Below, one piece after another: positions 2,029 to 25,000 of a stretch of 64,000 nucleotides of DNA (positions within the stretch are counted from its first letter, which is position 1; every line of letters starts with the position of its first letter). The position numbers and the translations under genes were made by a program. The stretch covers positions 1,612,001-1,676,000 of the forward strand of contig NC_047065.1 of assembly GCF_902459465.1 (NCBI RefSeq), given 5' to 3'. Below the pieces are notes generated by a model. That model did not search any database. It was not told where the DNA came from and saw only the letters and a program-made list of their open reading frames with translations. This stretch comes from Asterias rubens. Lineage: Eukaryota.

Positions 2029-5000
2029 TCATTTCCCTGCTGATGACGCTGCAATCATATCACTCGAGATCTGTAGTCTGTAATTACTAATATCATAGGA
2101 TTCATGCATGTCTTCGTTGCCCCACTGGCGCTGCATTCTCGCTCGTACAGGGTTCACCACCATCGACACCAAGCAGCTACTGAGGGCGCTGTTCATCGGA
2201 TTCCACGACTGCGCAAAAGTAAAGAATACGGCCGGACTAACGGGTATTTTGTGTCTGTTCTTCGGAAGTTTCCCGGCCTCGTGCTTAAATGTTGGTTTGT
2301 TGACGACGTAGTGCAGGAGGCGCTGCTGGAACAGGCTGCTATCAAACACCATGACCGGTTGGTTTCGTTCCAGCTTCTGAAGAGTAAGATTGGACATTTG
2401 AGAGTCGGCAATCGGGCCTTTCTCTGTACTGCACCAAAAGATTTTACTCCGGCAGTAACGTGTTGCGTAGATGTTACCATAGTCATCACATTGCAGTAGC
2501 AAACTAATAGGAGAGAACAAGAAAGACACTAAAGAAAATGTTGGGTTTTTTTAAGGACATTTTTTAACATCCCAGTATTTCATAAAGCAGGTGCTGCAGC
2601 CTATGGCAGTAACATTCTTGCAACTTTGATGAACAGTTGAGCCAAAATTTGTACAGATTTGTTGTTTAATGCATATCTCGGGATACACCAAGTGAGAATC
2701 CTGGGCCCAATTTCATAGAGCTGCTAAGCACAAAAATTTGCTTAGCATGAAATTTCTGCCTCGATAAAAACAGGATTACCAACCAAATTTCCACATGATT
2801 TTCAGGATTCAGCAAACATCAGCTGATTACCTGTAACAAGCAATGTGCAACAAATGGAAATTTTGTTGGTAATCCTGTTTTTTTCAAGGAAGAAATTTCA
2901 TGCTAAGCAAATTTTTGTGCTTAGCAGCTCTATGAAATTGGGCCCTGGTCTCTGACATTAACTAAGCGTGTCCAGGAGTAGGTTTCACATAGATTGTCCT
3001 AACTTTGGACTAGACCTAGGACTCTTTCGGAGTTATCAATAACTTAACGCTAGTCCAAAGTTAGGACTAGTAACTCATCCTATTTTGAGATAAGACTAGT
3101 CCGAATCTTACCCCTTCTCCAGAGCCTGCAAGACATGGTCTGTAAACTTGTACTGACTATCAGTCATTTCCGTTCGCTGATCGTCTGTAATATTTGGGAA
3201 CTCCACTCCTGCGGGGAAAGCGCCGTCAGTATTGAACTGCCATGGTTTATTGTAGTAGACGAGACAGCCATGTGGGTTCTTGATGTGTTCTCTGACGACC
3301 TCTTGAGATCGGTAACGGATTCGAATCAACAGTTCCCGGTCTGTGAACCAAATGAGGATAAAAGTCATTAAAAGTACCATTTCAGCATTGGTTTTTGCTA
3401 ACAAAACAGTTGCTGGCAGTGTAAGCACTTTATGTAAACTGACAAACCTGTAAAAGTTTGAGATCGATCGTCCATCTGGGTCACAACAAAACAGTAAAAA
3501 AACAAATTAGACATTTTGCATGACATCGATTAACAACTCAACTCACATATGGCCCCCGACATTAATTGGTTGCACAGTGGGAGGGTTAACCATCAAGTAA
3601 AGCATAAGTTTTTCTTACAATCAGGTAGTGCTGGAACTTCCTCTTTATTTGACGCATGACCTTCCTTGTCCTTCTTGAGGTCTGCCCTTGCCGGGGGTGA
3701 ACTTTCCTGAGGTTCATTTTCTTGTTGAGGAACGACCGGGTCAACGGTCATAGGTTGCTCCGATGAAATATCCTGGAGCTGTGATTGATCAATAGTGCCG
3801 ATCATGTTGTTGACTGGTACGACACCAGATATCATGGCTGACGGATTCTGGACGGGAACTGCTTGTGGCATTTCTTCTGATTCAACAAAATTATTAAAAA
3901 ATCAGGTTATTAATTTAAAATGATTTGGGGTTGAACAAAGACAAATTTACTAGAGTGGCTATTTTAAATGTTCAAATGAAAGATTCCCGAGCCATTATTG
4001 CTGAAGTGGGGCCAGGTTTCCAAACTGTTTGTGTTTGAAGGGCCTTTTGACTGTGACATTTGATACTCCTTATCAATAGCTGCATCTCAGATCAATGCAG
4101 AGTAGACGGTAATTTAAATCTGTGCTGGGAAGCACAATGTATTTTGCACAGAGGGCTGGGCAAAAATTATCATTCATAAATACCCCAGACAGTGTCGCTA
4201 CTCATATTAGTTGAGAGCGCGTCACATGGTGGTGATTAAACCGTTGATAATGACAGGCTGGAGCAGTTTATAATCGGCTGTCTTACGCGTGTCTGGCGCA
4301 CGCGTACGACGCCAATAATATCATGCGTTCCGCAATTCATAACTACTAGTAACAGTGCATAATCTATTTCTAAGCGCACGCACGTATTCACAACCCATGC
4401 ACATCAAACAGATTCTTCACAAAGTTTCTGAAAAAAATACTTCAAACCTCAAATTTTCAATTGTCAAAGTGTCTATAATTGTATTTTTATAATGTTTTTT
4501 AACAAAAGGGCATTTATGAATGGGAATAAAAGAGTAGTGGCTCATTCTAAAACGTCCGTTTAAAACCTTGCAGGATCGTTGCCGGTTTTAAATGGCCGTT
4601 AAATAACTCGTCGTTACCCTTTAACTCCCTTAGTCCTGGGCAGTGACGCCCAGCACTGCCAACCAAGGCTTTATTTCTCGGTTTAAAAAATATCAATTTT
4701 TTTAACTGGGCCAATTTTCATTGAGCTGCTTAAAGGCTGATTTTTTGCTTACTGTACGATTTTCATTTTATAGCGCTGCTAACCATAAGCATATAACAAA
4801 GGAATAATAACCTTCCGTTACTGCATGAAAATGAATGACATAACAAAACAAATCCATGGCGAAATGACTGCCTAATTTTCCTGCTAACCTGTGAAATACG
4901 TTTACACCTTAGCAAATATTTCCGCTACAGTAAGTACAAAAATGTGTTTACCGTTAAGCAGCTCTATGAAATTGGGCCCTGCAGCCAGTTTTCAGAACGC

Positions 5001-8000
5001 TAGGAATGATCATATAGGATGGGTTCAATGCGTCCTAACATGAATGGCTAGGAATGATCATATAGGATGGGTTCAATGCATACTAACATGTATGGCTAGG
5101 AATGATCATTAGGATGGGTTCAATGCGTCCTAACATGTATGATTAGGGAATTGAGCTCTTCCTAAGTCCTAAGATTAATCCTAAGTTAGGAAGAGTTTAG
5201 TGAAATCGCCGGCTGGTTGTATCAATCTCACCTTGTAATAAATTGGAAAAATCTTGGTGGTTTTGTGCTTCGTACATGTGTGGTGATTGGGCAGATGGTT
5301 GTAGATACATGGCGTCCATGCTTTGAGCTGGATAAGTCGGCGAACTTTGCATTTCAACTTCTGCTTGTTTCAGCATGTTCTGAAGGACCTCAAGGTGTAC
5401 AGACATTTCTATAAATATAAAAAATATAAAAATAATAGTGAGTTTATTCAATAATAACAATCTTTAAAGGCATGGGGACCTTTGGTAATTGTTGAAGACC
5501 AGTCTTCTCACTTGGTGTATCTCAACATATGCACACACACAAAAACTGTGAAAATTTGAACTCAATTGGTTGTCGAAGTTGCGAGATAATAATGGAAGAA
5601 AAAAACACCCTTGTCACACGAAGTTGTGTGCTTTCAGATGCTTGATTTCGGGACCTCAAAGTCTAATTCTGAGGTCTTGAAATCAAATCCATGAAAAATT
5701 ACTTCTTTCTCGAAAACTATGTTACTTCAGAATGGTTTATACCATCAAAACCTCTCCATTGCTTGTTTCCAAGTAAATTTTTATGCTAACAATTATTTTG
5801 AGTAATTACCAATAGTGTCCAGTCCCTTTGAAGACACTGGACACCTTTGGTAATTGTCAAAGACCAGTCTTTTCATTTCATCAAAACATTGTACTCAATA
5901 ATGTTGCAATTACTGTAATATATGCTCATAGTTTTTGAAAAATAGTTTTATAAATGTGAACAAACATCATTTGAACAAGTACAAAGTTTGGGGGAAACAG
6001 TTTAAAGACGCTGGACACTATTGGTAATTGTCAAAGACCAGTCTTTTCACTTGCTGTATCTCAACATATGCATAAAATAACAAACCTAAGTTGCGAGATA
6101 ACAATGAAAGAAAAAATACCCTTGTCACACGAGGTTGTGTGCTTTCAGATGCTTGATTTCAAGACCTCAAATTCAAATTCATTGAAATTTACTTCTTTCT
6201 AGAAAACTAATTTACCTGCAGAGGGAGCCGTTTCTCACAATATTTTATACAATCAACCTCTCCCCACTACTTGTTACCAAGTAAAGTTTTATACTAATAA
6301 TTATTTTGAGTAATTACCAATAGTGTCCACTGCCTTTAAGTCAGAGAATAGACTCTAAAGCGTAGATTTGTGACTACAATGTACTCTTTCTACCAACGAG
6401 TCTACACTTTCTCATCCATTCTCCTTAACTTAAAAGATACCCTTACTGTATTACCCACCTATTTGACTTGCCATTTGCTGTTGACTTAGATCTGGTGGAC
6501 TCTGAATAGGAATCAAACCATGAGAATTGGTTAACGATTAAATACAGGATTGACAACTTATCAAAAAAGGAATTAGCTTCAATATAACAGCTTGCTGATT
6601 ATGGAGTCCATCCTCCAGAGAAATATTTCCATCTGAAAGTTCACTGATTCTAAATTTCATACCAGTACCAATCCTCCAGAGAAATATTTCCATCTGAAAG
6701 TTCACTGACCAGAACCAATCCTCCAGAGAAATATTTCCATCTGAAAGCTCACTGATTCTAAATTTCGTACCAGAACCAATCCTCCAGAGAAATATTTTCA
6801 TCTGAAAGCTGACTGATTATAAATGTCATACCAGTGCCAATCCTCAAAAGAAATATTTATATCTGAAAGCTCACTGATTCTAAGTAACAATCCTCCAGAG
6901 AAATATTTTCATCTGAAAGCTCACTGATTCTAAAGTTCATATCAAAACCCCTTCGCTTTTCGATTAAGTGCACTGGGTGCTTGTACATTACACTAAACAC
7001 AGGACCAACGGCTTTACGTCCCATCCGAAGGACAAAGTATCATGGTTTTGCGTAGATCTTGCTGTAAGGACACAGGTGTCACGACTCTCGCACCAACACT
7101 CTGCTGAACAGAAACACCAGAGCTTGAGTTCGGTGCTCTTAACCTATAGGCCATTAATACCAGATGTTGTATTCAAAACGATATTACCTACTTACCATGG
7201 CTAAGACCATGTCGCAACAATCGTCATCGTTTTGAACACTGGGAGTTTCAATGATACCTGCTTCCGCCACAGCTGCAATATCTTTAAAGAAATCATCAAA
7301 TCCAAATAATTTAAAGATGTTAAATTTGCATCGGAGATAAAGAATATTTATTTGGTTTTTAACTATAATATACACCGATCGGTGTTATAGCACTGTACAC
7401 TCAGTACTAACCCGAGCTCTGTGAAAAAAATCACAGGTATATTACTCGGGTGGGATTCGAACATAGGATTGGAGCTGCATCTAGCCACGGGGCAATCTCA
7501 GTGGTCTAGTTGGTGTGACACTGCTCTAGAATTGCAAAGGTCGTGGGTTGGAATCCCACCCGAGTAATAAACCTGTGATTTTTTTCACAGAGCTCGGTGT
7601 ACAGTGCTAACACACATCTGTGTATATAGGTAAAAACTAAACGAAAATCCAAATAATGTTAAAAATGTGTGATCAACTTGAGCAAGTGACAGTGCTGTAG
7701 TTGAATCCCTGTTGTTTGAGTCCTACAATCAGAGCCAAAATGGTTGGGCCACCCATTCGCAAACTGGCAATTGACATTCCCTGTCCCGCCCCCCGGTCAA
7801 TGTTGATGGCAGCGCTGACCGCGAAATTAAGAGTCAACATAGAAAGGGGGCAGGGGGATATGGCCGAGATTGTAGTCACTCATGAGTATGTTAAGTTTGT
7901 CTTGTCAGTAAGTCATTGCGTCACACACGTTCTTATCTGCTGCAAACCCAAAGTGGTTTGTTTCTTTCGGCTCTATAGCTGGCATACATTTGTGCATGCT

Positions 8001-8465
8001 GTGTGTAGTTTTAGAAAACTTCACTAATTTCATGGCTCAAAGCATTTCTTACGAAAGAAATATTTAACTAAGAGAAACATTTAAAAAAGAATTGATACAT
8101 TTTTTTAAATTATGAAACTGATTCATGATGCACCTAATTAGGAAACTCCTTCTCTTACTACATAGGCCCCCCCCCCCAAAGAAAAAAACATGTCTAGTGT
8201 CCTGACTTTTTGAAAAAAGGAAGAATAGAGGGTCTTTTTCTTCTTAAAAACTTGCCGCCTGACACATTTTTAAAAGACAAAAAGGAGGTGGCCTCTAAAA
8301 AGGAAGCGGGCAGGACACTAAACATATTTTATTTTTTGTTAGGCCGAAGTTACCATTCTGAAAGCCATATGGCATGTTATCTTCACCAAGCATTGCTAGG
8401 AACTGCCCCAGTGCCGCATTCTGCTGTGCTTCATCAACATTTATCACCTCTTGATTAGTCTCCAT
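2029..8465 (-). CDS. IRF-like protein A: C-terminal IRF association domain (IAD, SMAD/FHA fold), no DNA-binding domain found; 7 coding exons, 459 aa
   Basis: Exons (minus): 8354-8465 (METNQEV...GFQN), 7196-7281, 6459-6501, 5232-5408, 3619-3876, 3112-3340, 2029-2503. All are GT-AG, phases join, total 1380 nt. The C-terminus has IRF IAD hallmarks: RELLIRIRYRSQEVVREHIKNPHGCLVYY, VEFP...QYKFTDHVLQALEKGLLL, GNIYATRYCRSKIFW (cf. IRF5 IYAIRLCQCKVFW, IRF4 LYAKRLCQSRIYW), KLERNQPVMVFD (cf. IRF4 KLERDQTCKLFD), VFFTFAQSW, LVSMVVNPVRAR, and RLQIS. The N-terminal exons were assigned from splice signals and from phase matching with paralog B, so they are less certain than the IAD exons. Confidence 0.85.
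2704..2944. mobile_element. PIF/Harbinger-like palindromic MITE (representative of the most abundant family in the window)
   Basis: About 100-bp TIRs starting GGCCCAATTTCATAGAGCTGCTAAGC, with 3-bp CTG duplication at 2701-2703 and 2945-2947. Related copies at about 4710-4980, 13402-13578 (CAG TSD), 21465-21720, 22655-22910, 23357-23598, 35500-35745, 37545-37742, 39222-39365, 42820-43075, 45018-45318 and 55605-55805. Confidence 0.8.
4999..5142. repeat. 48-bp tandem repeat, 3 copies
   Basis: GCTAGGAATGATCATATAGGATGGGTTCAATGCGTCCTAACATG.ATG repeated three times. Confidence 0.85.
6611..6940. repeat. About 61-bp minisatellite, 6 copies, in an IRF-like gene A intron
   Basis: Unit TCCTCCAGAGAAATATTTCCATCTGAAAGCTCACTGATTCTAAATTTCATACCAG.ACCAA starts at 6611, 6672, 6719, 6780, 6841 and 6891 (two truncated units). 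Confidence 0.9.
7355..7640. mobile_element. Inverted-repeat element enclosing a tRNA-like (Pol III A/B box) head
   Basis: Long inverted arms at about 7355-7462 and 7547-7640 (CCGAGCTCTGTGAAAAAAATCACAGG..TTACTCGGGTGGGATTC). The interior has A-box TGGTCTAGTTGG and B-box GGTTGGAATCC. Confidence 0.6.
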
Positions 8466-9105
8466 CTTGTATTCAAAAACGACGATCCGTACACCAGGAT
8501 AAAGGCAACCAAAAGATTATCTAAAACAAGGAAGATAAACGTTCATTTCAGTTTTTTAAAATGTTATCATGACACAAAATCATGACACAAATTCTAGGAA
8601 CACGAACTTAATCCTCATTCAATGTCTAATGAATCCTTTTTAACACTCAAAACACAAAAAGGACAAAAACTTACCAGATCCGGAGTCAAACAGTGACAAT
8701 CAGCATTTGTAGTGGAGTAGTTGGGGACTGAATTACGGTAAGAATTTATATTTTTTAAACAATTTTTGAGATTGCGGAGTGGATTTTCTGTCGCCCCCAG
8801 GGTCAATTAATGAGAGTTCAAAGGACACAAAGAGCCTAATTTTGGCGAGATTAAAAAAGAAAGAAAAGAGATTTGCGCAAACAATATTAAAAGAACCAGA
8901 AAAAAAGCAGAATCGTTATTGTCGTAAGAGATGTCAACCTATGAGGTTATGGGAGACGAGAGCGGAACGAAACCTCATAGTTTTAGGAGTAGTACGAAGT
9001 GTTGGACCAGTTTGTCGTTTGCCACTCGAGAGAATCCCGTAACCCTCCGGCCTTGCGACTGTCGGGAGAAGGGTTACATTATCGCAACTAACCCTGAACC
9101 AACAA

Positions 9106-9234
9106 ATTAGTTTATCATATTATTTATTGTTATGTATGTTGTTGTTAAAACTTATTTTGACATTATCACTGATATAATGTCAAAATAAGTTTTAACAACA
9201 ACATACATAACAATAAATAATATGATAAACTAAT
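9106..9234. repeat. Perfect 61-bp inverted repeat with 7-nt loop
   Basis: 9106-9166 is the exact reverse complement of 9174-9234; loop CACTGAT. Confidence 0.95.
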
Positions 9235-10271
9235 CATTCATTCATTCAATTTTGAAATGATTTGGATAGACAACGGAGTTATAGATTTAAGATTATATTT
9301 ATAAACTTACAATTAACTAAAAACCTACTTCTCCAAAGTCCTCGTGAAAAGAGTTTCTGATAAAACAAATATGGTGATGACTTCAGTGTGTTTATCTGTG
9401 CCGCTACCTTTCATTTAGTTACTATTTTTGGGATTTTGGAATTCCCAGATTGCATCATTGAACAAAATAATGTTCAACATGTAACATGTAGTTCGATGTA
9501 ACAATTATGCTTATTTTTGTCAATAAAAACCAGATAAAACAACACTTATTTTTCTTAAATATTCTTTGGGATACTATTATCTTTCAATATCTAAAAAACT
9601 AATTAAATTTGTATAATGTGATTGTCAATAAATATAAGCATGAACTACATCAAGCCAACACTGTGATAACAACGCCGTTGTTGCTTTTATTTTTAGCAGA
9701 TGACGACACCGATCATACGGGGAATACCCAAAACCTTAAAGGGCGCCCTCAATGCTGTCAAATCAATGCAACAAAGCAGTGTCGTCTGCATTACAAGGGT
9801 CAAAACATTTTGTTTAACAGTCAATGATATATTTTTTCATTACGTGTTGTAGTATTATTGTGAAGCCAAATTGAACTCAATAAAGAACGAATTGAATACC
9901 AAGTGAATATGTCTCATGAGCGTTTTATTCTCCGGTTCTCGACCATCCTGCTATCCCATAATATGTCTCCCAACTTCTAGAGGTCACTCTAATTTGCATA
10001 GGTCTCATTTGCATAGCACAGTAAACAATGCATGTAATGCATACATGTACATGTAATATCAGGACACTACACGTGTTATATAATGAAGATGATATCGCTG
10101 ATAATGAAGGTTTTTTATTGTCAACTGAATGATCAACGGTAATTATTGTGATGAATAATCCATACCATTCTGATTCTCAAACTAATCCTGAGATGGTTTA
10201 AGGAGTGATTTCAGGCCCAGTGACCAGGGGTAATAATGTGAAGTGCTTTGGGACGCCCTTCGGGTGTAAAA

Positions 10272-10528
10272 NNNNNNNNNNNNNNNNNNNNNNNNNNNNN
10301 NNNNNNNNNNNNNNNNNNNNNNNNNNNNNNNNNNNNNNNNNNNNNNNNNNNNNNNNNNNNNNNNNNNNNNNNNNNNNNNNNNNNNNNNNNNNNNNNNNNN
10401 NNNNNNNNNNNNNNNNNNNNNNNNNNNNNNNNNNNNNNNNNNNNNNNNNNNNNNNNNNNNNNNNNNNNNNNNNNNNNNNNNNNNNNNNNNNNNNNNNNNN
10501 NNNNNNNNNNNNNNNNNNNNNNNNNNNA
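10272..10528. other. Assembly gap (N run) between the two IRF-like genes
   Basis: Run of N; the true size is unknown. Confidence 0.99.
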
Positions 10529-11709
10529 TTGTGAGAATAATAATAGATAAAACCAATGATAAAAATGTTCAACACAAAATAACAAATCCTCAAAAAATTC
10601 CCTCTCAAAGATGAAATTCCAGGCTTGGAAATTTATTGATATTCCTAAACCGTTGACAAGTTTCCTTATAAATTAGAAAAACTACCTCTGTTATAAATGG
10701 GAAAATAAATAAGAACAACTTGTGCTAACTTCAGATACATAAAGTGGTTAAAAAATAATGATTTCTCTGATAAACCATTTCAGTATTGGTAATTGTCAAG
10801 GACCAGTGTTCTCACTTGTGTATCCCATCATAAGCATAAAATAACAAGCCTGTGAAAATTTGGGCTCAATTGGTCATCCAAGTTGCGAGAAAATGATGAA
10901 AGAAAAAACAACCTTGTTGGACGAATTTTGTGTTTACAGACAATAATAACAGTCTTCTAGCTAGAAGTCTTTTAATATTTTAGTGAGAAACTATCTCTTT
11001 CGCAAAAACTACGTTACTTCAGAGGGAGTTGTTTCCCACAATTTCTTATACTATCAACAGCTCTCCAATGCTCGTTACCAAGTCAGTTTTTAAGTTAATG
11101 GTTGTTTCGAGTAATTACCAAATGTGTACCTTCCCTGTAAAGGAGGGCCGTTTTATGTGTACAATTTTGCATTTTAGCAATTTTGTTATTTACAACATGA
11201 ATTGGAAAATGTTTACTTTTATTTTGCACACAGACATATTACATATTTTGCCGATACACAATACAAGCAGAAGTAAGAAAGAACAATATTTACAATCTCA
11301 TACATGAGAAGCATTCATACACATTGGCATAACCGGATTTGTTTAAAATATTTTTTGTTGTGGGGGGGGGGGGCTATTTAATGTATTGAAACAAATGACT
11401 AATTGTGTTTGTCCATTAAATGCACCATTTTAGATTCCACGCAAACCTGAAAGCATTAATAACAGTTTTAAAATATATGGCCTTTCATGCAAGAGAAATC
11501 TTTTCTGATACTTTTTCTCTACAAGAATTTGTACAAATGATGCTGTTTTAAAAGGGAATATGTACAAAAAGGTTCTTACAATGCACAAAACATTTTGCTC
11601 TGCTCTGCTATGAGGGAAATCGTTCAGCGATTCTATTCTTGTGATGATCACTATTAGAAGCACTTTGAGCGCTTTATAATTTTGTTGTTATTATTTATTA
11701 TTATTCTAA

Positions 11710-14696
11710 TCACAACTGACTTGGAAGACTCTTCGAAAGCTGAATTCTGTAATCACTAACGGGATATGAAATATGCTGGTCGTCATTTCCCCAGCGATGT
11801 TGCATCCTTGGGCGAACAGGATTCACGATCATCGACGTCAAGCAGTAGCTGAGGGCACCCTCATTAGGGTTCCACGGCTGGGCAAATGTGAAATAAATAG
11901 CAGGGCTGATCGGTGAGATGTGGTTGTTGGGTAGGAGTCCTGCTGGTTCATTTCTAAACGTGGGTTTGTTGACAATGAAGTGCTTTAGCCTTTGCTCGAA
12001 CATCTCGTTATCAAAGACCATGACTTCGCTGTTCCTCTCTAGTTTGTACGGAACAAAGTCATCCATTCTCCCTTCAGCGATCGGTCCTTTCTCTGTACTC
12101 CACCAGAAAACTTTACTTTGACAATGTCGAGTCGCATAAACATTTCCCATATCATCACATCGAAGATACAGGCTGAAAATGACAAGAAAGAAAAAGCAAA
12201 CCCTTCATATTTCATTTGTCCTTTTTCTTGTGAAGCCAAGGACTCTCAGAAAAGTGAACTTAATCACTGTACTAGCCAAGAACCCAATGGAGAGAAGACA
12301 ATGAAGGGAATATCAGTTTTATATGTGGGAGGAGAACCCCAGGAACTATCCTAAGGAAAACCCATGCACTCAGGTAGGGACTGAAAACCCAATCTACATG
12401 GTGCCCCCGGTGAGTTTCGACGCGGGTCCTGGAGGTGAAAGGCGACCCTTGTACAAAATCAGATCTACCTACCCATTTTCTAGAGCTTTCAGAATTTGCA
12501 TGGTGCACTTGAACTGAACATCTGTCATTCTTTTCTTCACATTGACTGCAATGCCTGGGAACTCCACTCTTGTAGGCACAGCCTCTCCCGAGTCAAACTG
12601 CGAAGGTTTATTATGGTAGACGAGGCAGCCATTTGGGTTATTGACATATTCTCTGACCACCTCTTGAGAACGATAGCGTAGCCGAATCAACAGCTCCTTT
12701 CTTGAAAGTTGTTCAAGTGTCAGTGCCGGTGTCTTTTCTCTTGATGCATTCCTTGTTTCTGGAGAATTCAGAGCCACCTCAGCGATATTGCCTGTTGAAG
12801 AAGTTGGTAGCAGCAGCGAGTCTTTCCTAAGGGATCCCTGATTGGTAAAACTCGGCTCAGGAACAATCCCTGAAATCATTGCAAACGGATTCCCAACTGG
12901 AACTGTTGGAGCAATATCTTGAGAAAAAAATTGATAACAAGAACAGTTTCACAATCTTGAACAATGAAAATGTGCGCAAGTGTACACACAACTCATTTGT
13001 TTTAACGAGTGAAAGGTCTTCCTTTGACTTCATTGAGGGCGCTATTTAGGCTTTTGATGACATATGCTAGGGGTCTGTTTAAAATAGTTAGACAAACAAC
13101 ACTGTAATGTTTGTTTTAAAAACCTTACCATAGCTATCAGAAGGTGATAGTCGAGCATTGTCCATCCATAGACTTGTACCAGTCTCCATCGGCGATTCAT
13201 TCTGATTGATCTGTCCAAAGACATCATTGATGAAGTCTAGATCTAGTGTGGAAAAACAGAGACTATTTCAAGTTTATCTTAAATCTTGTACCATTGAGAA
13301 ACAAGAGTGTTGAATTGTTGACATGTTGACATTATGGTATCACACTGGAAACAACAATATTTCTTTATTGTCAAATTCACAGTATTTTGGACTAAGTCCA
13401 GGGGCCAATTTCATAGAGCTGCTTAAGCAAAACAAAACATGCTAAGCACAACAAAATTATGCTCACCAGGATAAGGTTACCAGCCAAACTACCATGTCAC
13501 ATGTACCATTTGTGATTGGTATCCACTCATCTCTGCTTAGCGGAGATGTGTTTTTAAGCAGTTCAATGAAATTGGGCCCAGGGCTCATCCACAATGGTAT
13601 GAGACATGGGTCTAGGACTCGGACTCGTTCCCAACTAACTCAAAGTTTTACTAAAAGACATCAGACTCGACTTTTATGACTCCGACTTCATACTTATTTA
13701 ATTTATCCCCCCCCCCAAAAAAAAATTCTCAGAATATCATGCTAAACCCATAACTTCAATGCTTATTCTTAATTTGAGAGGAACCAAAATATTTCAATGC
13801 AAGTTGATACCGAGAAGTATATTCACCAACCTAGCATTGGTAGCGTCTGTTCTTGTCCATTCTCGTTAGGAATCTGTCCGGAGAAAATACAAACAAATGA
13901 ATGGCCTGATGACCAAGGCTGGGGCTTCCTTGAAGACAATGACAATTAATTAAATTATACCTGTTCATGTTGGTTGTATTTCTTTAGCCTTCAAGAAAGA
14001 CTCTGCTACTGCTAGGGTTGAAACCTCATTTAATTACATCAACAAAAAATTGTAGCTTTCAAATTTTTTTGAACTTACCGTGGGCAAAAGCATCTGGTCA
14101 AAATCATCATCAGGGACACCATAGGAGGATGAAAGTCCCACTGGTTCTTCAAAAGGCAATTTGAAGAAAAAAAGAAATTTAAACTTGGGTGCAAGTAAAG
14201 GGCAAGGCAAAGGCAAGGGCAAGTGCAAGTAAAGGGCAAGGCAAGTGCAAGGGCAACGACTGATTATAATAAAACAGCAATGTAGCTGCTCAACATTGCA
14301 CCACATTTTTAAGTTAAAGTTAAAAGCTCCATCAAGCTAACTGCATTTTACTCATTTAAAAAATACAGCACCTCAGCAATTCGTATTTTTGATGGAAGCT
14401 TTCTACCATCATTATCTTCAAATCGTGTAAGTTTAAAGTGTAAATGTGTGGATATTGGATTTTGTGTCCTACAAAAAATAAACAGAGTTCTGTGAAGAAA
14501 ACAAATTACACAAGCAAATGACTCGGGTGGGATTCGAACCAAAATGTCTTGGCTTACCTGTTATGCTCCTCATAATAGGAGGCAACCCAAGGTCATCCAG
14601 CATCTCATGTTGCTTGTCGAGCAAACCTTGAAGAGAGTTCGTTGCTAGACTAGTTGGAAACATGTTCACTGGGGAAATGTTCACCCTTGCAGGCAT
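11710..14696 (-). CDS. IRF-like protein B: tandem paralog of A, IAD only; 6 coding exons, 423 aa
   Basis: Exons (minus): 14558-14696 (MPARVNISP...MRSIT), 14079-14146, 13831-13873, 13129-13242, 12473-12917, 11710-12172. All are GT-AG, phases join, total 1272 nt. IAD motifs: KELLIRLRYRSQEVVREYVNNPNGCLVYH, VEFP, QILKALENGLYL, GNVYATRHCQSKVFW, KLERNSEVMVFD, IYFTFAQPW, CLTSMIVNPVRPR, RIQLS. The exon phase pattern matches gene A, including an identical-length 43-nt micro-exon. Confidence 0.85.
12305..12460 (-). mobile_element. SINE-like dispersed repeat (copies at about 26105-26235 and, opposite strand, about 43085-43240)
   Basis: Shared block GGAAACCCATGCA.TCAGGTAGGGACTGAA.ACCC.AATC.ACATG in all three loci. 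Confidence 0.55.
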
Positions 14697-15941
14697 TGAA
14701 GGCTAAAAACCAACTGGTGTACAAAAAAGAAAAGTTTTAGTCCATAAATCACTGAGTTCTACTTACCAATTCAAATTGTCCTGCAATTTTATCTTACATT
14801 CTATGCACAATCTTTGTCTCCAATGACAATGAAATTATAGACTTGTGGACAAGTTGTTTTTAAAATGTTTGTCGTGATGGTAGCGTTCCGACTTTTTACT
14901 CGATTTACTTGTGACAGTGGCAATGTTCTCAGAAGATAGTTACAATAATCGGAGCTTTAAAATTATTGTGCCACTTCACAAGACTGCTTTCCCCCGCGAG
15001 ACTAATGCATCGCAACTATTGAGAGCAGTCATAAGCCAGCAGACTCGTATGAGGGCAGTGATTTTGCGAGAGCAGTCTTTGATCGCTGAAAGCTAGCTAC
15101 TGAGTGTAATTTTACAGTAAAACAACAACACAATCTTAAAGATTGATATTATAAATAGAATAAAATAAAAATAAAAAGTAATACAAATGATTTTTCATTC
15201 ACTGATAACTATGGAAAATGTTGATCGAGCAAGATGAATGTGATGATGAATTATTGAAGTATTTTACAAAAAGAATCATGACATAAACTTACCCACACCC
15301 AGCAACTGCCCAGTGGAAAACGGAAGAGACGTAAATTTGTGAATCAGTGTAGCGCTAGAGCAGGTGAAAACAGTAATTTATAGAGAAAAAAACACTGAGT
15401 GAATCGACGATATAATGATAGAGCTAGAGAATTCTGCATGGCATGTGCTAGCGCAGCAGTTAGAATGAATGTGGTCTGAGTGTAGGATTTGTAAATAAGG
15501 AAATGACTCACTGTGTTAAAAACAAGTGTTTCGTAATGTTGGCATTTGGAACCAAAAATCCTGCATACTTCACCCACTACACTACCTCCATGCTCCGCTT
15601 AGCTGTTTGCAACATTCATAACGTAATCTCGCAGGCGGGGGAAACACAACGATGACACATCACACCAGAGCGGATGTTATTTTGGGAGTCAGAGAAAAGC
15701 TTGAGCGTCAAAAGCGGGTAACGTGTAGTTCATGCATTTGTTGTTTTGTGGTTTTATTTAATTTTTGAACAAAAAATGTATCTTCTTGTCTTACAGTTAT
15801 AAATTCAGGGTAGCAACATAGTTGTTGATGTTCAGAATATTGCTGAAAGTGTGCAATTTATTGCAACTTTGTTGTTGTTATTGTCTGTCACCAACTACAT
15901 AGTACTTAAAATTCTGTTTTTAGTATTAGGCAACGTCTTCC

Positions 15942-15951
15942 GGGATTCCCC
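15942..15951. promoter_or_regulatory. Consensus NF-kB site upstream of IRF-like gene B
   Basis: GGGATTCCCC (minus strand GGGGAATCCC) fits GGGRNWYYCC and lies about 650 bp upstream of the putative 5' UTR exon donor at 15288-15292. Confidence 0.4.
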
Positions 15952-16294
15952 CTTTCTGAGTGTTTTGAAGAGGGCGCCCTCTAATGTGTTGACTTCTAGA
16001 AAAACATCAAGGGTACAGAGAGAGGTATCGAATTCGAGGAATTTGTTCTTCTTCATGAATTCCATTCTATCAGTATATTTCAGTGGGATCAGCGCTGGAA
16101 CTGACAAACTGCAGTAAAAACTTAATCTTGAGGAAGTGTGTTTTTGAATTGAAGCCAAACTTTGAAGTTAGAATACTCAATTGAATTAACTATAAAAGAA
16201 AAGGTGTAAAGCAATTGTTTGAGCCTAGTTGTTACCCTGAACCTAACTTCAATAAAAAAGTTTTGTACATGCGAAGGTTTTACCTCTGATTGGC

Positions 16295-16574
16295 TAACAC
16301 CTGTTTCAGACAGACGCTCTAGAGTCGGGCCGAACCAAATTCTGAATTAAGAACATGACAAGTTCGACGTCTCAAACAGTTAGGAGCGACTGGATGTGCT
16401 AGAAGTCAAAAGATCGACTGTTTCAGACGTCGATCTTGTCATGAGCCAAGCCTTATGTAAATGTTATGTTCAGTTTGCCTGTTTAAAACCAAAATTTAAT
16501 TGGGTCGACCCAGAGTCGCCCCTAATCTATTTGGTTTGGAGCGACTCTGGAGCACCTGTCTCAAACAGGTGTAA
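16295..16574. mobile_element. MITE between IRF-like gene B and the cyclin E 3' end
   Basis: Inverted termini TAACACCTGTTTCAGACAG..GCTCTAGAGTCG / CGACTCTGGAGC..CTGTCTCAAACAGGTGTAA, plus internal inverted repeats. Confidence 0.65.
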
Positions 16575-19500
16575 TATGCTTCTGGAAACTTTCTGAACTT
16601 CGACCTCAACTTGGGACAAAAAGAAGTAAATGGTAGACTTGATGGACAAGCAAAACGGCTCTCTCACAACTACCTAGCTAGTTTAGACCATAGTCGTAAG
16701 AGCATAGTCTTGCGAGATAGTTGTGAGAGCGGTTTCATCACCTGAAAGATATTCAACAACTTGTCCACAAGTCTAAAGGTTAAGTAGAGTTTGTTAACAC
16801 CCCAAGAAAAAAACCCACCATGAGACATCACAAACTTTAATTATGAAGAAAAACATACCCAGTAGTACAGTCAAAGTAAAGTTGAATTCGTTATTTTATT
16901 TCAAAGCACCAACATACTCTCTTACTTGGTACAAAAATTCATAATCAACGGTATAAAAAATGAACAATTTATACAATATCAAAAATGAGGACAAACTTAT
17001 TAACATAATTAATTAAAATTAAGTTAAGGGAAAAGTATAATCCCTCACTTAAAATTTTGTCTAAATAACAAAATATCACACCACTTGCATTATCATAAAA
17101 TAAAACACCTTTCAATGATTCTGAACTCAAATTATGAAGATTAATATCAAGTTTAAAATTGAGAAATTGCAAAATATTTCACATAAACATTGTTAAAACA
17201 ATTAAAAAGAAAAACAATACGAGAAATAAAAATAAATATACAGGTTTTCTACTCTAAGTCCAAGGTGATTTTTGCCAAGTCCATTATGGTCAAACTTTGT
17301 CAAAATAACACTTTTTGAGAAGATATTCGAGAAAAAAAAAAAACCTGCACTCATGTGAATAAACAGAGCCCTGGCTCGAAATATTTAGCATCTACAATTA
17401 ACCATTATTAATCAGTAATAAAAGCCCGGTTCATACTTCCTACGAATGCAATATGAACTTTGACATCAGATCAGAGGGCCGTTTTTGCAGCGAATGTTTC
17501 ACATGAGTTCAGCACAAGTCAACTGATGCAAATTATTTGTTGAGAATTTGTTTTGTCCAAATTTGTATGGCGTTCGCAGGAAATGTGAAGCGGGTTTAAG
17601 AAAGCAAACTTCTTTATAACTGTCCCTTTGCATTGTGTTTCCCTGGCAACATAAATACTTTACACTGTACAGATAGTTCCACACTAGAAATAGTCTTTGA
17701 GTTCTTTTATAAAGACCTATACAGTACACCTTTATTTAAAAAAAAAACACCCCCAAAAACAAAACGTCAACAATCTTGTTTCAAATCAATCGACCAAAAA
17801 ATAATAATAATAATACTAATTTTCAAGTCCAGAAATAAGTGATTTGGGGAGAAATGGTGAACTTGATTTTAATGCAGGCATTATATTTGGTCTTTGAAAA
17901 AAAGAATTGAAAATTTAATTGATTACAAGTGTTGACCTACATGTACGTACATATGGTGCAAGCCTTAGAATACTTTTCATGATATTTAATCCAAAATTTT
18001 CTGATTTTTCCCAAGGGCAAAAATAAAATAAAATTGGAGTACGAAAAATATCATGCCTGTTTGATCTCTTTCTTTCAGCATATTACATTCTTTTTAAACA
18101 ATTAAAAATTCTAAGTACTTTAAAATTTAATTCAATATTTTGAACTGTTTCTTGTAGAGTACCCCTGAAGTCTTTTGACACTGGGTTAAATATTTAAGTG
18201 CTGATCAATTACAGAGAAGGCACAAATGTTTTTTCGTTAGATACAATTTCATAGCAAAACTTTACAGACCCTTTGAATTATGACGCCACTAGCTCAAACA
18301 CTGCCCTCACCGAGGTTAAAGGAAGACTTATCATTGGTTGAGAGTTGTGCAGTGTCAATCTCATAACTTTCTTTAAAAACACATTCATTATAATCAGCTT
18401 CAAATTCTTATTTTTTAAGTAAACAAATTCTAATCATTCGTTTTTAAAGGGTCTATGTACTTTTTCCTTACATAAAACACAATGTCCACAGATTTACATT
18501 AAACTGACACAGTTTGAAGATTATGATAGTAGAAAGCTTCCCTTGAAATTTTACTTTCTGAGGTGCTGTATTTTTGAGAAATGAGTAAAACAAATAATTT
18601 TCGTCTCAGTTTTAGCATGTAAAATGTTTTACCCATTTCTCAAAAACTACAGAACCTCAGTTCGTAATATTTGAAGGGAAGCTTTCCACTATCCTTATCT
18701 TCAAACCCTGTGAGTTTAATGTAAATCTGTGTACATTTTGAAAAAGTACCCAAATCCTAGAGCATTCACAACTAAAGGGAAAACAGAAATCAACAATTCT
18801 CAACCTTTTTCCATTTTCTTACCGTCATGTCCGCCGAGAAACATTAGCATTTAAAACCAAAACTCTAATAGAAACTTTCTGTACAACACGACAATAAATA
18901 TATATATTACACACAGCATTAACGTATACGTGTACATAAAAAGATTAGTGCATTAATACTTAAATACCTCAGTCATCAACGCTCTTAGTGAATGAGTTGC
19001 CTGAACTTTAAAAGCGCCTTGGAAAGAATTAAATAGTCTGGAAATTTGGAATGTAAAATTATTAAATAATGTTATAGTTTCAGGGGAAAAGAAAATGTTC
19101 GGGCAGAGCTTGAGCTTCATTTAAGATAACATTAAAAAAATCAAACAAAATCTCAAACAAAATGGATGGCTGTATGTGGATACCCTGTCACACCATCATG
19201 TATCACAAATAACAAATAAAAAATCCTAAAAAAAGTCCTGTATTTTTCTGTTTTTTTTTTTTAACAACTGTCCCAAATCCTCCAAAATCCCATTCCGGAA
19301 GTTGTCTGACTTTGTAGGATTCAGAACAATAAGTCAAATAAAAATTGCTCATCATTGGAATAAACAGACCCTATCTTATTAAAGTTGAAACAAATTGGGC
19401 ATTGAGTTACCAAAGACCGGTGGATTTCGGAGGGCTTGAGAGGGTCTTAAGCCAAACATACTGGGGTTTAGAAATACAACTGGAAAAACTTAATTTTACC

Positions 19501-20988
19501 GATAAATACTGGCACTTATAATCATTTTCAGAACTTGAATAGAAATAACCCATTGTAGTTCAATGCAGTTTTAAAAACTGATGCAGATAGTCTGGTCCCG
19601 TTTTACAATATTATAATTTGTATTGTAGCATTGTTGATGGGAATATGGGGAACCTGACTAAGATATCTTCAAAATAGTTTATATTAAATTAAATAAATTT
19701 GTCAACTGGTGCAACTCCTTCAGCCTGTTATTGCAAACATGGTTTGCTTTAAGAAATTCAGTATTTACAATTATCACACGTACATTTAAAATGGTTTGAT
19801 ATATTATTTGGAAGCTACAGATATTATATTCAACCACAAGAGGGCGCTACAGTTATATTTGAGAGGAGGGAGTAAGGCAAGAAGCACATTTTACAACCAT
19901 TCGGAAATCGTTAAAACTATTTGAAAGTAATCGTTTCTGGGTTTTTGAAGAATGTCTGGGAAAAATAATACATGTCAGTAAAGAAATTGTTTTTTGTTTT
20001 TTGTTGTAGAAATGTACTGTGTAAATATGGGATCGAGTGGAAAATATAATTTCATGACACGACCTTTACGATGTCCTTTTTGGTAAAATCCTGCATTAGC
20101 GTCAGCTCTGGCCATCTTGTTAAATGCCACTAGCAGTCGCTACAAAGAATTTCTAAAACGTTGACTTTAGTTGCCTTTTACCCCATTTCCTTCCTAAATA
20201 TAATATACACGCTTTTGTGGTTGAGAATAAGTTATATTGTGTAGTATCCTTCAATAAGCACATTATTTTTTTTTTTTTTAATATTTTTTTATATCAATTT
20301 TCAACTCAGAGACAATGAAAAATGTACAGTTATTTGGTAAACCTTTTTTTCTCGGTAACAGTTGCTAGAAAAGAGTATAAAACACTTATTTTGAAACTGA
20401 CATGACGAAATGATGGAAATTTACAAACAGCCTAGTGTCCCTTGCAGGGCACAATTGTCTTATACATACATTACCCGTTTTAAATTTGAAGGAAAAACAA
20501 ATTAAAAACTTCAAAAAGAATTTATGAGAGCTTTTTTCATTGTAAACGAACTACAGTCAACTTAAAGCTACACATAGAGGTGAAGAAAAAAAAAAAAAAC
20601 CTTGACAGTCATTTTTCGCAAACCTTTTGATCATATTTCAAAAGTTTGATTTGACAGTATTAGAATATATCTTGTTCTGGAAATTTCATTGTAAATGCAT
20701 ACTTGGTCATTGAGATATGGACCAAATTTCATAAAGCTGTTAAGCAGAAAATACTTCTTAACCAATTTCTTCGCTAAGCAAAAATAGAGAGGGGCATCAG
20801 TCACAAAAATGTAAACTTAATATAATTTTGGCTGGTAAAATGTTTCTGCTATAAAGCAATACCTTTCTGTGCTTAGCGAGTTTTTTTTAGCTTCCAGTCT
20901 TTATGAGATCTGATAGTTTAAAAATGGCATGTGGTAAACCTGTTTTCCTAGGAACGGACTTATTCCATCCACTGTAATCTACAGCCTG

Positions 20989-21310
20989 GAGCAAGTTCGA
21001 GTGTGCACAATGGTTAACTAAAGGTTGACCATTTTGACTCGAACCCAGGCTGGTCGACCATTGGTTGACTACTGTGGTCGACCATTTGGAACCAGCCTCG
21101 AGCCCATGGTTTTTTCACTGGTCCCAACAGCATGTTCCATTCTAACATGTGTTTTATCGCAGAGGGGAACCAGTGACACTTTAGCGAAAAGAGGTGGAAG
21201 GTTGACTAAACTACCAAACGAGTCGTTCGGATGAGAACGTCACTGCGCATGTGCGTTGCTAGTCTGTGGTCGACCACTGGTGGACTAAATGTGCGCACTC
21301 GAACTTGCTC
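20989..21310. mobile_element. Harbinger-like MITE downstream of the cyclin E stop codon
   Basis: TIR GAGCAAGTTCGAGTGYGCACA at both ends, CTG duplication at 20986-20988 and 21311-21313. Confidence 0.75.
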
Positions 21311-22090
21311 CTGATTTGAAGGGAACAAGCATGCTTTGTGTTTTACATGCGTTGCTGGTGTGTATTTTCATATTAGTGGATTGCACAATACACACTATGC
21401 ATAATAGACACATGAGCTTCCAAGATTTCAATTTCTTTGTTGAGAGATCGCCTAACATCACATGACCAGGACCCAATATCATGGCTCTGCTTACCGCCAA
21501 TTTCTGCACTTACGATCATGATTCCCCATTTACGTGCAAGCGCAGAATTTCTGCGCTAGCCTTGTAGGCGTAGAATGCCTAGTAATGTGGAGTACGCACG
21601 CGCAGAAGTCAAATTTTGCTGCTAACCTGTGAAATACGCTTGACGTAAGCACAGAATTCCCTGCTTCCGTAAGCGCCGATTCTGTGCTTAGAGTAAACAG
21701 AGCCATGAAATTTGGTCCTAGTGTACACTCTAACATGAGAGCTACACTTAACTGATTTCGGCATCGACCCAAATCAATTGTCACCAGGGAGTTGTTGCTA
21801 CCTTCTCCTGGGGCTGAAACAGTAATACCCCCTTCATAGTCCATAAGGATGTAGGCATGGGTATCATAGGAGCCTGGCTGGTATATAACAATCTTCTTTA
21901 CAAGTCTACCAACTTGTCTCTTCTTCCAATTTACATTGATTTGACACAAAAGAACTAATTTACTTCATGAAAAAGCGTATCATAAAGTAACGACATTGAT
22001 GGATTATTTTAATCAGCAGCTTTGTGACGAAAAAGAAGAAGAAAAACACCCGTAAAAGTTAAGCGTGAAAATGATAAGGCAAACCTGGTT

Positions 22091-25000
22091 TCATAGAACG
22101 CTTTGCGTACGAGACTTGTGATGACTATGAGGGGGTGTGAGGACTCCTGGTACGTGGACTGGGCTGCAGTTCATGGGTTGCATAATATGCTCAAGTCTCT
22201 CTAACGCTTTATCCTGTCAAAATAATCCAAGAGAAATATTTCAAATGGAGGAATGCAACTCATCTTCAATACTACCTAACCTTAAGTAAAACATCAGAGG
22301 CTTTTAATTTGTTGTTTAAGTTTTTAACCATACACCGATGTTTACCAAGCACTGTTTTACCAAGTGCACTCCCCAAGTAATTTGTTCAAAATGTAAGTCC
22401 AACTTCTTGGCTTAATATTTAGTATGAAAAAGGACACATCTTAAAGGCCATTAAAACCTTTTTATGGCCACCAAGACCAGGGCAACAGAGACCTTAGACT
22501 GGGCCCCTGTCTTGTGGACTGCTCCTCAAATTCGAGCCCTGAGAGTCATTGGTGGTAAAGTAAGAGCACAGCACAACAAATTGGGAGTCAGACTAAGACC
22601 TGGGTCATACTTCCTACGAATGCAAAGCGAATTTTGACACTACAAATTCGCAACGGTTTAACTGCAACGGTTTAATTTCAAAAAGCCTGTAAGCACAAAA
22701 ATTCGCTTAGCATGAAATATTTTCCTTGATAAACACAGGATTACCAACCAAATTGTCAAGCGATTTTTAGGATAAGCAAACAACAGCTGAATACCAGTAT
22801 CAAGCAATATGCAACAAATGGAAATTTGGTTGGTAATCCTGTTTTAATCAAGAAAGAAATTTCATGCTAAGCAATTTTTTGTGCTTACAGGCTTTATGAA
22901 ATTGGGCCCAGGCTTTAGGGAGGAAGAACATCATGACTGTCATTAAGACAGAGCAACACTTACCAGTAGTTGAAGGTCGTTGGCATGGGTTTGTATGTTG
23001 TGGGCATCATCTGAAAATATATGTTTGAAGCCTCTTGGTTCAACGAGACCTGCCTCTCGTATCGTTATTGCAAATGCTGACATCCAATGAACACACGCTG
23101 CTATGTCGTCCAACTTCATGCCTACAGAAATAACAATCAGAAAGGTAGTAGTTAATATTCGTAGGACAGGTCTTTTAGACGTGAGAAGTCTCCCGCTTTC
23201 CGGAAAATCTACTCTGCACAGCAAGACAAGTTCTCAAAGGAACATAATCTATCTACCAAGAAGATATACACATGGTGTTACTGCAAACCAAATAAACAAA
23301 AATAAGAAACTTTGCACAATGGGAGTATAATCAGGTGAGGTTTGCGGTAACACCAGGGGCCAATTTCATAGAGCTGCTTAAGCAAAAATTTTGCTGAAGC
23401 ACAAAAGTAGCACGCTTATTTTACACATGTTACTGGCCAAAATGTCATGCCATATACATTGCTTGTGACTGGTATTTAGCTGTTGTTTACTTAGCATAAC
23501 AATTGAGTGGCGTCTTAGCCAGTAATCTGATTTTACTAAGCAAGGATTTTTTCGCTTAAGCAAAATTTTGTGCTTAAGCAGCTCTATGGAATTGGGCCCA
23601 TGTTTAAATCTCTTTTGAGTAGTGTTGGTTCTGAAAAGAACCGATGTTGAACTCAACCTCTTGATGAAGACGATCAGAGCAAACTGATCAAACGTTGAGT
23701 CGTCAACCACAGGTTCTTTTTAGAACCAACACTTCTCAAAAGAGATTTCTGCACATTTCACCTGAATAAGAAAGTAACTCTTTCTAACTCCTGCTATGTA
23801 TTTCTTTCCTTTATATTATACTGGCTTCAGAAATAAAAATGTATGGTTTTTTTTCCCCTTACCTGTAACTTCTAGCACAAGTTCTTGTGACGTCATATGG
23901 TAAAGGGCTGAGGCTGCTACAACACTATATGGGAACTGTAGACATCCAATATCTAATATACAAAGATCCAGGAGCTGTGGAGAGCAAATCAAAGAATTTA
24001 TGAAAACACAGAAAAGAAGACAAATAAAAAACAGGCCTAGAAATTACTTGGAGGGCATGGCTTCTGTTGCCCCCGTTCTAGGCCTCTGCCACCCCTTGGT
24101 CTTGGCCTTGGTGCCCTTTTAAACAATTTCCATAGACTTTAAGATTTTGCAAAGGAAGAGCCCTCTGTAAAATGAAAATGGCCCGGATTCACACTAGAAA
24201 CACTGTTTAGACTGTTTGCAATTTGAGGGACCTTGTAAAAACATGCATTTGAAATGGAGTCACGTCAAAATACTTGCATTTTCAAATACAAGCGCTGATT
24301 TTTATTTATAAACAAGCATGCACGTTAAGTAGTCATTCTTGGAAGCCAATCAGCCTTGTTTTGTCAGACCATCCCTCCCAAGAGATAAGTGGTGAAAGGC
24401 ATCGATACAACGCACTGCCCATGTTAGTGAGAGGCATCGATACAATGCATTGCCCATGTTAGTGAGAGGCATCGATACAATGCGCTGCCCATGTTAGTGA
24501 GAGGCATCGATACAATGCACTGCCCATGTTAGTGAGAGGCAGCGACACAATGCACTGCCCATGTTAGTGAGAGGCATCGATACAATGCACTGCCCATGTT
24601 AGTGAGAGGCATCGACACAATGCACTGCCCATGTTAGTGAGAGGCATCGACACAATGCACTGCCCATGTTAGTGAGAGGCATCGACACAATGCACTGCCC
24701 ATGTTAGTGAGAGGCATCGACACAATGCGCTGCCCATGTTAGTGAGAGGCATCGATACAATGCACTGCCCATGTTAGTGAGAGGCAGCGACACAATGCAC
24801 TGCCCATGTTAGTGAGAGGCATCGATACAATGCACTGCCCATGTTAGTGAGAGGCATCGACACAATGCGCTGCCCGTGTTAGTGAGAGGCATCGATACAA
24901 TGCACTGCCCATGTTAGTGAGAGGCATCGACACAATGCACTGCCCCTGTTAGTGAGAGGCATCGATACAATGCACTGCCCATGTTAGTGAGAGGCATCGA

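Follow-up and report, generated by a model that had tools for sequence, protein, structure and literature searches.

Introduction

Two adjacent genes of the sea star Asterias rubens encode proteins that end in the association domain of interferon regulatory factors (IRFs) and begin without the DNA-binding domain (DBD) by which IRFs are defined in published surveys (PMC2885996, PMC3308963). The locus raises the question of whether the DBD is truly missing, where such genes came from and what they might do. The two genes, here called A and B, lie in tandem on the minus strand of a 64,000-nt stretch of DNA (RefSeq assembly GCF_902459465.1, NC_047065.1, positions 1,612,001 to 1,676,000), which was analysed as a whole and is referred to below as the window. 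Here we report that both genes are intact, spliced paralogues of the canonical A. rubens IRF that arose by duplication of only its 3' part. The architecture, origin and age of these genes are well supported; their function we infer.

Gene models

Genes A and B were placed with a splice-aware exact mapper. Both map to the minus strand exactly and without mismatches, in N-free sequence and with GT-AG introns throughout, and their coding sequence (CDS) spans agree with the public annotation of the source record (Asterias rubens GCA_902459465.3, LR699095.1, ~1.60-1.63 Mb). Gene A corresponds to the public protein LOC117289027 isoform X1 ('uncharacterized protein'), of 459 amino acids (aa), and gene B to XP_033626879.1 ('interferon regulatory factor 6-like'), of 423 aa, which has 99-100% tblastn identity to the locus. 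The original prediction, made from the letters alone, had proposed two complete, spliceable open reading frames (ORFs) of these lengths, and the exact mapping of both public proteins bears it out. Since both genes are already in RefSeq, the loci themselves are not new. Their parts are listed below in window coordinates, IAD standing for the IRF association domain.

2029..8465, minus strand: gene A CDS, 7 coding exons (8465-8354, 7281-7196, 6501-6459 of 43 nt, 5408-5232, 3876-3619, 3340-3112 and 2503-2029), from exact spliced mapping and public annotation
2029..3340, minus strand: gene A exons 6-7, coding for the IAD (aa 226 to ~422) and the C-terminal tail, from PF10401, AlphaFold2 (AF2) and Foldseek
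6459..6501, minus strand: gene A micro-exon of 43 nt, the counterpart of canonical IRF exon 7 (46 nt)
11710..14696, minus strand: gene B CDS, 6 coding exons (14696-14558, 14146-14079, 13873-13831 of 43 nt, 13242-13129, 12917-12473 and 12172-11710), from exact spliced mapping
11710..12711, minus strand: IAD-coding part of gene B, namely the 3' part of exon 5 and exon 6, from PF10401; 56-58% identity to gene A
13831..13873, minus strand: gene B micro-exon of 43 nt, the counterpart of the gene A micro-exon
10272..10527, no strand: run of N outside both CDSs, in the 3.2-kb spacer from the gene B stop (11710) to the gene A ATG (8465)
14697..22100, minus strand: N-free spacer from the cyclin E 3' end (~22.1 kb) to the gene B ATG, holding no DBD-like ORF

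The IAD is kept and the DBD is absent

Pfam searches identified PF10401 (the IAD) in both proteins and in their exon translations, with E 1.7e-20 for gene B and with weak matches of the related MH2 model (PF03166) beneath the PF10401 match. PF00605 gave no match on either protein at E<=0.1, and the relatives described below likewise carry only PF10401, with the MH2 model beneath. Before the IAD, gene A has no tryptophan and gene B has one (aa 1-225 and aa 1-195, respectively), so the tryptophan pentad is absent from both N-terminal halves, as had been predicted. Without DBD or pentad, sequence-specific DNA binding by the IRF-family mechanism is not possible. The RefSeq names 'IRF6-like' and 'IRF5-like' are consequently misleading for proteins unable to bind DNA in the manner of an IRF.

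A DBD profile based on two canonical IRFs, those of Acanthaster and the hemichordate Glandiceps, was searched against all six-frame ORFs of at least 10 aa. Over the 64-kb window its best E value was 4.2, which amounts to nothing, whereas a control IAD profile from the same two proteins recovered four IAD exons there (E 1e-6 to 1e-22). As a positive control, the DBD profile was run on the canonical genes of Acanthaster (record L005) and A. rubens (record L006), in which it recovered both DBD exons with E 1e-29 to 1e-36. It found nothing at the IAD-only loci of A. amurensis, Acanthaster, Holothuria, Diadema and Amphiura, each searched together with 10 kb of upstream flank.

It is conceivable that the short models are an annotation artefact, with distant or unassembled DBD-coding 5' exons spliced on. 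Acceptor AGs stand immediately 5' of both start codons (8467-8466 in gene A, 14704-14703 in gene B), so in-frame upstream exons are formally possible, and the run of N lies 1.8 kb upstream of gene A. The original prediction had placed an in-frame stop within the first exon, a few codons upstream of each ATG. In gene A the TAA at 8519-8517 is indeed in frame; in gene B the TAG at 14705-14703 is also in frame, but its AG is the best acceptor, so this stop lies inside the exon only if an acceptor further upstream is used.

The space available for hidden exons is nevertheless small, as gene A is confined upstream by gene B, and gene B by the 3' end of cyclin E. The earlier claims that gap-free sequence connects gene B with cyclin E and that no Trp-repeat exon lies there both held in the N-free spacer listed above. 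The suggestion that the run of N could conceal a DBD exon found no support: the A. amurensis locus (L007) is N-free and runs collinear to the window from cyclin E across gene B and on into gene A, 72 nt separate the two gap flanks in it, and the DBD profile was null there. Evidence also comes from a sea cucumber transcript. A 1881-nt Holothuria contig (L003) carries an entire 426-aa ORF unbroken, although in the genome this gene is split by six introns over 16.7 kb; the contig is therefore a spliced transcript, and each of the three frames is closed by a stop in the 149-nt leader before the ATG. We conclude that the DBD is missing from the locus itself, beyond a mere lack of annotation, and give hidden DBD exons hardly any weight, as very unlikely.

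The public record of the same assembly (L001) is free of N, compared with the 256-N run in the window, which may represent masking and not an assembly gap; none of our conclusions draws on this record.

Origin from a canonical IRF gene

The canonical A. rubens IRF (LOC117288984, 649 aa, DBD and IAD) lies on the same chromosome, ~0.4 Mb off the window. Its exon structure compares with that of gene A as follows.

Canonical A. rubens IRF: exon lengths 59, 250, 178, 71, 70, 65, 46, 195, 318, 229 and 469 nt; intron phases 2, 0, 1, 0, 1, 0, 1, 1, 1 and 2
Gene A: exon lengths 112, 86, 43, 177, 258, 229 and 475 nt; intron phases 1, 0, 1, 1, 1 and 2

By intron position and phase, exons 2-7 of gene A are exons 6-11 of the canonical gene, with a micro-exon of 43 as against 46 nt and a 229-nt exon of identical length. 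The two introns within the IAD fall at exactly homologous residues in the two genes, directly after LP[ADE] and between E[KR] and G, and both introns recur in the members from Holothuria and Amphiura. The canonical IRF of Acanthaster likewise shows this agreement in intron positions and phases, in the 229-nt exon and in the 43/46-nt micro-exon. Gene B has the phases 1, 0, 1, 1 and 2, with one intron lost, its exon 5 being gene A exons 5 and 6 fused. A trace of the canonical linker persists as well, in that its motif DLDMINDVIT appears as DLDFINDVFG in gene B and as DLAMIDDIIG in Patiria.

The match to canonical exons 6-11 identifies genes A and B as 5'-truncated IRF duplicates, and it follows from this origin that their N-terminal halves consist of the former inter-domain linker, preceded by a first coding exon that is new. 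The gene structure thus gives a clear origin by partial tandem duplication. With respect to the IRF family, genes A and B lack PF00605 and the Trp pentad; they possess the IAD1 (PF10401, IRF3-9 group) and descend from an IRF gene.

Related genes also stand close to canonical ones. A stretch of 32 kb in Acanthaster holds the canonical IRF together with a 744-aa IAD-only gene and the orthologue of gene A. In A. rubens, a third IAD-only gene (507 aa, PF10401 only; L006:31185-35322, LR699095.1 ~1.196-1.200 Mb) lies directly downstream of LOC117288984 and probably corresponds to the 744-aa gene of Acanthaster.

Family distribution and age

Relatives were gathered by an exhaustive profile search with both terminal-exon translations as query, which returned 21 proteins, followed by cluster look-ups and word-based searches. 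IAD-only members were found in the Asteroidea (Asterias rubens, A. amurensis, Patiria and Acanthaster), Ophiuroidea (Amphiura), Holothuroidea (Holothuria) and Echinoidea (Diadema), with three paralogues each in A. rubens and Amphiura. The sole non-echinoderm among the named matches of the exhaustive search was a canonical hemichordate IRF. The word-based searches, made with gene B, the family alignment and the canonical IAD, returned 3-6 proteins each; a word filter restricts their reach, and the distribution given here is that within echinoderms.

In a tree of the IAD, 13 IAD-only sequences fall on one side of a branch and three canonical echinoderm IRFs plus the hemichordate IRF on the other, with support of 87/92. 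The shared architecture in four echinoderm classes is consistent with one ancient loss.

Three further records were noted. In another sea star (GCA_014845345.1, JACSEG010002410.1; L002:353-1571), an orthologue of gene A is without introns 4-6; the end of intron 3 and the collinear downstream DNA are kept, and a stop stands at the Gln of VPVQNPSAM. A retrocopy, an allele with intron loss or a sequence derived from RNA could each account for this contig, which was not used as evidence. The Acanthaster model XP_022092150 (333 aa; L004:6771-10273, DF978548.1) is N-terminally truncated, and exons for QFLSMLGEDN, DLQMINDIIG...SSPHLYDSN and EELLQTVPVQDPSAM lie upstream of it, partly within a separately called 134-aa gene. 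A Logan contig (L011) considered as evidence of expression was rejected, being genomic rather than a transcript.

Selection on the two halves

The IAD is clearly under long-term purifying selection. Its nonsynonymous divergence (dN) is 0.18 between A. rubens gene A and Acanthaster, with the synonymous divergence (dS) saturated and undefined, and 0.30 between genes A and B, with dS 2.3-2.8 and hence a ratio (omega) of roughly 0.1-0.14. For such long-range pairs YN00 and NG86 fail or saturate, and only dN and a bounded omega are quoted. Across 12 members, 12 IAD columns are invariant. Together with the spread over four echinoderm classes and the shared phases and 43-nt micro-exon, these values sustain the earlier proposal of an old, maintained duplication.

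Over the short range the picture is different. A. rubens and A. amurensis differ by a dS of ~0.04 and gave the following estimates.

Gene B, whole CDS: omega 0.68
Gene B, IAD: omega 0.43, on few substitutions
Gene B, N-terminal half: omega 1.7, on 13 nucleotide differences
Gene A, N-terminal half: omega 0.92, on 30 nucleotide differences

There is therefore no measurable recent purifying selection on the N-terminal halves. The original prediction had named a dN/dS near 1 as a sign that would speak against it; this sign is present in both N-terminal halves, and the gene B IAD weakly escapes it.

These values bear on the idea that genes A and B have no function or are slowly decaying as duplicates, their ORFs having stayed open by chance. 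Such a view would be in keeping with the N-terminal dN/dS of ~1, with the intron-poor copy and its premature stop in the related sea star, and with the start codon of gene B (ATG, 14694-14696), which is GTG in A. amurensis (L007:9968-10001), where the annotated start has shifted to about Met12 and the protein has 410 aa. It is difficult to reconcile with ORFs and splice sites that are intact in both Asterias species and in the orthologues of other orders and classes, with an IAD dN of 0.18-0.30 set against saturated dS, or with the invariant IAD columns and the short N-terminal motifs that have been kept. We see only a slight chance that the genes are decaying. A second isoform of A. amurensis gene B has its start in the micro-exon.

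Structure of the IAD and the C-terminal motif

A model of gene A was built with AF2 from a 12-sequence alignment. Residues 226-422 have a predicted local distance difference test score (pLDDT) of 83-93, and a Foldseek search with the model returned as top matches the IADs of IRF4 (5BVI, target template modelling score 0.77), IRF5 (3DSH) and IRF3, followed by MH2 domains; probability was 1.00 for the IRF4, IRF5, IRF3 and IRF9 IADs. By sequence, the closest solved relative is the IRF5 IAD, with E 8.8e-12 for gene A alone and 2.1e-30 for the family profile.

The tail beyond the fold carries a short serine motif in both genes.

2065..2079, minus strand: gene A R444-L-Q-I-S448, a pLxIS-type motif; phmmer aligned YRLQISS to IRLQISN of IRF5 (3DSH)
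11734..11748, minus strand: gene B R412-I-Q-L-S416, a variant of the motif, from the family alignment

Relatives show LQIS, PQIS, AQIS, LQLN or FKFS at this place, and the motif is kept as [LIPA]Q[IL]S. By sequence the C-terminus thus has a pLxIS-type serine motif of the IRF3/5/7 type, the phosphorylation of which is predicted. The serine of the aligned IRF5 motif is a target of IKK-beta.

In the profile alignment with IRF3 chains, R317, R320, K322 and R348 of gene A stand opposite R285, H288, H290 and K313 of IRF3, which we take to be the residues that bind the phosphoserine of pLxIS motifs; the correspondence is one of sequence only. The same positions in gene B are R, Q, K and R, as in IRF5, again as an equivalence in the profile alignment.

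The N-terminal halves

The N-terminal halves of A and B share ~32% identity over 131 alignable codons and have net charges of -30 and -14, respectively. Acidity is consistent in the N-terminal regions of the IAD-only members, at -14 to -36 net compared with only -11 to -12 for the canonical linker, and the regions are Q-rich in several of them. Nearly all of residues 1-224 of gene A have a pLDDT below 50 in the AF2 model, and this half is probably disordered.

Within it, short motifs are kept from Asterias to Patiria and Acanthaster, namely QFLAMLGE[DE]NM, SSPHMY, VPVQNPSAMISG and TIDxSQLQ. Short motifs within a fast-changing N-terminus are the usual pattern of disordered regions that carry short linear motifs.

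Proposed function

We favour, with a probability of roughly 0.55, the joint reading that genes A and B are 5'-truncated IRF paralogues whose products pair in a phosphorylation-dependent manner with canonical IRF and most likely damp its output. Given the retained IAD fold, the putative basic pocket residues and the RLQIS motif aligned with IRF5, the proteins would be expected to be phosphorylated by IKK/TBK-type kinases and then to pair through the IAD, either with each other or with canonical IRF. A heterodimer of A or B with canonical IRF would have one DBD rather than two, and the proteins could be competitors for kinases and adaptors as well. With a single DBD or none, the complexes formed would damp IRF output upon a signal, and signal-dependent damping is the most likely net effect. 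DBD-deleted (delta-N) forms of IRF3 and IRF7 act as dominant-negative inhibitors in vertebrate cells.

Several points weigh against this reading. Patiria (RPQIS) and Acanthaster (RAQIS) have another residue in place of the Leu of the C-terminal motif, and urchins keep this motif only loosely. The roles given to the IRF3 pocket residues and the delta-N precedent are general background, the immune role is assumed from family membership, and the RefSeq models of genes A and B are predictions. The evidence fits an inhibitor and a co-activator alike. The ISRE-type (interferon-stimulated response element) motif GAAANNGAAAS has 0 matches in the window, against 2.6 expected. The monophyly of the IAD-only sequences has moderate support, in a tree with long branches and a single outgroup. 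Recent constraint is weak or unmeasurable between the two Asterias species, dN/dS being ~1 in the N-terminal halves and 0.43 in the gene B IAD on only 13-30 substitutions.

The main alternative is that the proteins are co-activators, their acidic, Q/P/S-rich N-terminus serving as a transactivation domain which the IAD delivers to DNA-bound canonical IRF, so that output would go up. The consistent acidity of the N-terminal regions relative to the canonical linker, the Q-rich composition of several, the acidic-hydrophobic short motifs kept across asteroid orders, and the retained IAD, motif and putative pocket would all suit such a role. The N-terminus is, however, evolving near-neutrally between the Asterias species and can barely be aligned between A and B, no nuclear localisation signal was identified, and DBD-deleted IRF3 and IRF7 are inhibitory in vertebrate cells; we regard co-activation as unlikely.

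The fast evolution of the N-terminal half could also be taken as arms-race-like. Together with the conserved basic residues of the putative pocket and the several paralogues per species (three in A. rubens, three in Amphiura), it would fit cytoplasmic adaptors or decoys that work independently of canonical IRF, docking on STING/MAVS/TRIF-like pLxIS adaptors or other IAD/MH2 partners, or acting as bait for pathogen effectors that target IRFs. Intrinsic disorder explains the fast evolution equally well, and we judge this role quite improbable.

The preferred reading of pairing and damping can be taken a step further. We tentatively suggest that the IAD-only genes form an ancient, dedicated tier of inhibitory IRFs, born before the classes split, which would be activated by the same kinases as canonical IRF and would titrate it through phospho-dependent IAD heterodimers. 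This tier would be a counterpart of the inhibitory Smads, overlooked by DBD-based surveys.

Comparison with known systems

Like the canonical members of the IRF4 supergroup (IRF5, IRF3 and LOC117288984), the starfish proteins have the IAD fold, an RLQIS motif aligned to IRF5 and basic residues aligned to IRF3, and their intron positions and phases in linker and IAD are identical to those of canonical echinoderm IRFs. They differ from canonical IRFs in having no DBD or Trp pentad and a far more acidic linker.

In consisting of linker and IAD without a DBD they resemble the delta-N constructs of IRF3 and IRF7 and the short form of trout IRF10a, which have been used as, or proposed to be, inhibitors of the full-length factor; the trout form is a truncated re-initiation product and a proposed negative regulator (PMC4718558). 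Those are constructs, or isoforms of a gene that encodes a DBD, whereas in starfish dedicated genes make nothing but the DBD-less form, and these genes have persisted from before the divergence of the echinoderm classes.

Smad6/7 and the MH2-only Drosophila protein Expansion (PDB 4R9P, recovered here by both sequence and fold searches) likewise have a related beta-sandwich fold and keep the interaction domain, with DNA binding lost. They belong to a different family, homology is at superfamily level only, and the likeness is an analogy. Viral IRFs of Kaposi's sarcoma-associated herpesvirus are also related to IRFs and work by contacts between proteins instead of classical ISRE binding (PMC11209080), but they are viral and keep a degenerate DBD, whereas the starfish genes are host genes with no DBD.

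Surveys of deuterostome IRFs use DBD profiles for their searches and give the sea urchin two IRFs (PMC2885996), and TIAMMAt found little diversity of domain architecture in the IRF family (PMC8662601). The searchable literature yielded no account of a DBD-less family of IRFs in echinoderms. If the reading proposed here is true, conserved, multi-copy IAD-only paralogues would constitute an extra regulatory layer in invertebrate IRF signalling, and the 'dominant-negative' architecture built artificially in vertebrate work would have become established in dedicated genes. Larvae of sea stars and urchins would then offer a tractable system for IRF signalling without interferon.

Other features of the locus

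Feedback control of the locus by IRF was also considered and found no support in the same count of ISRE-type matches (0 against 2.6 expected). The cyclin E gene is on the minus strand at ~21.9-26.3 kb of the window and beyond, and its A. amurensis orthologue has Cyclin_N and Cyclin_C; the order cyclin E, gene B, gene A is common to both species.

Intron 2 of gene A contains a minisatellite (window 6610-6949; Tandem Repeats Finder periods of 47, 50, 61 and 108 nt, ~4-5 copies). The orthologous array of A. amurensis measures ~1.2 kb (L007 ~19544-20784), and copy number therefore differs between the species. A dispersed repeat with the translation ...SSSMKLGPG..., probably a small transposable element, occurs in introns and spacers on both strands, at 2690-2949, 4950-5040, 13385-13600, 22674-22912 and 23340-23610.

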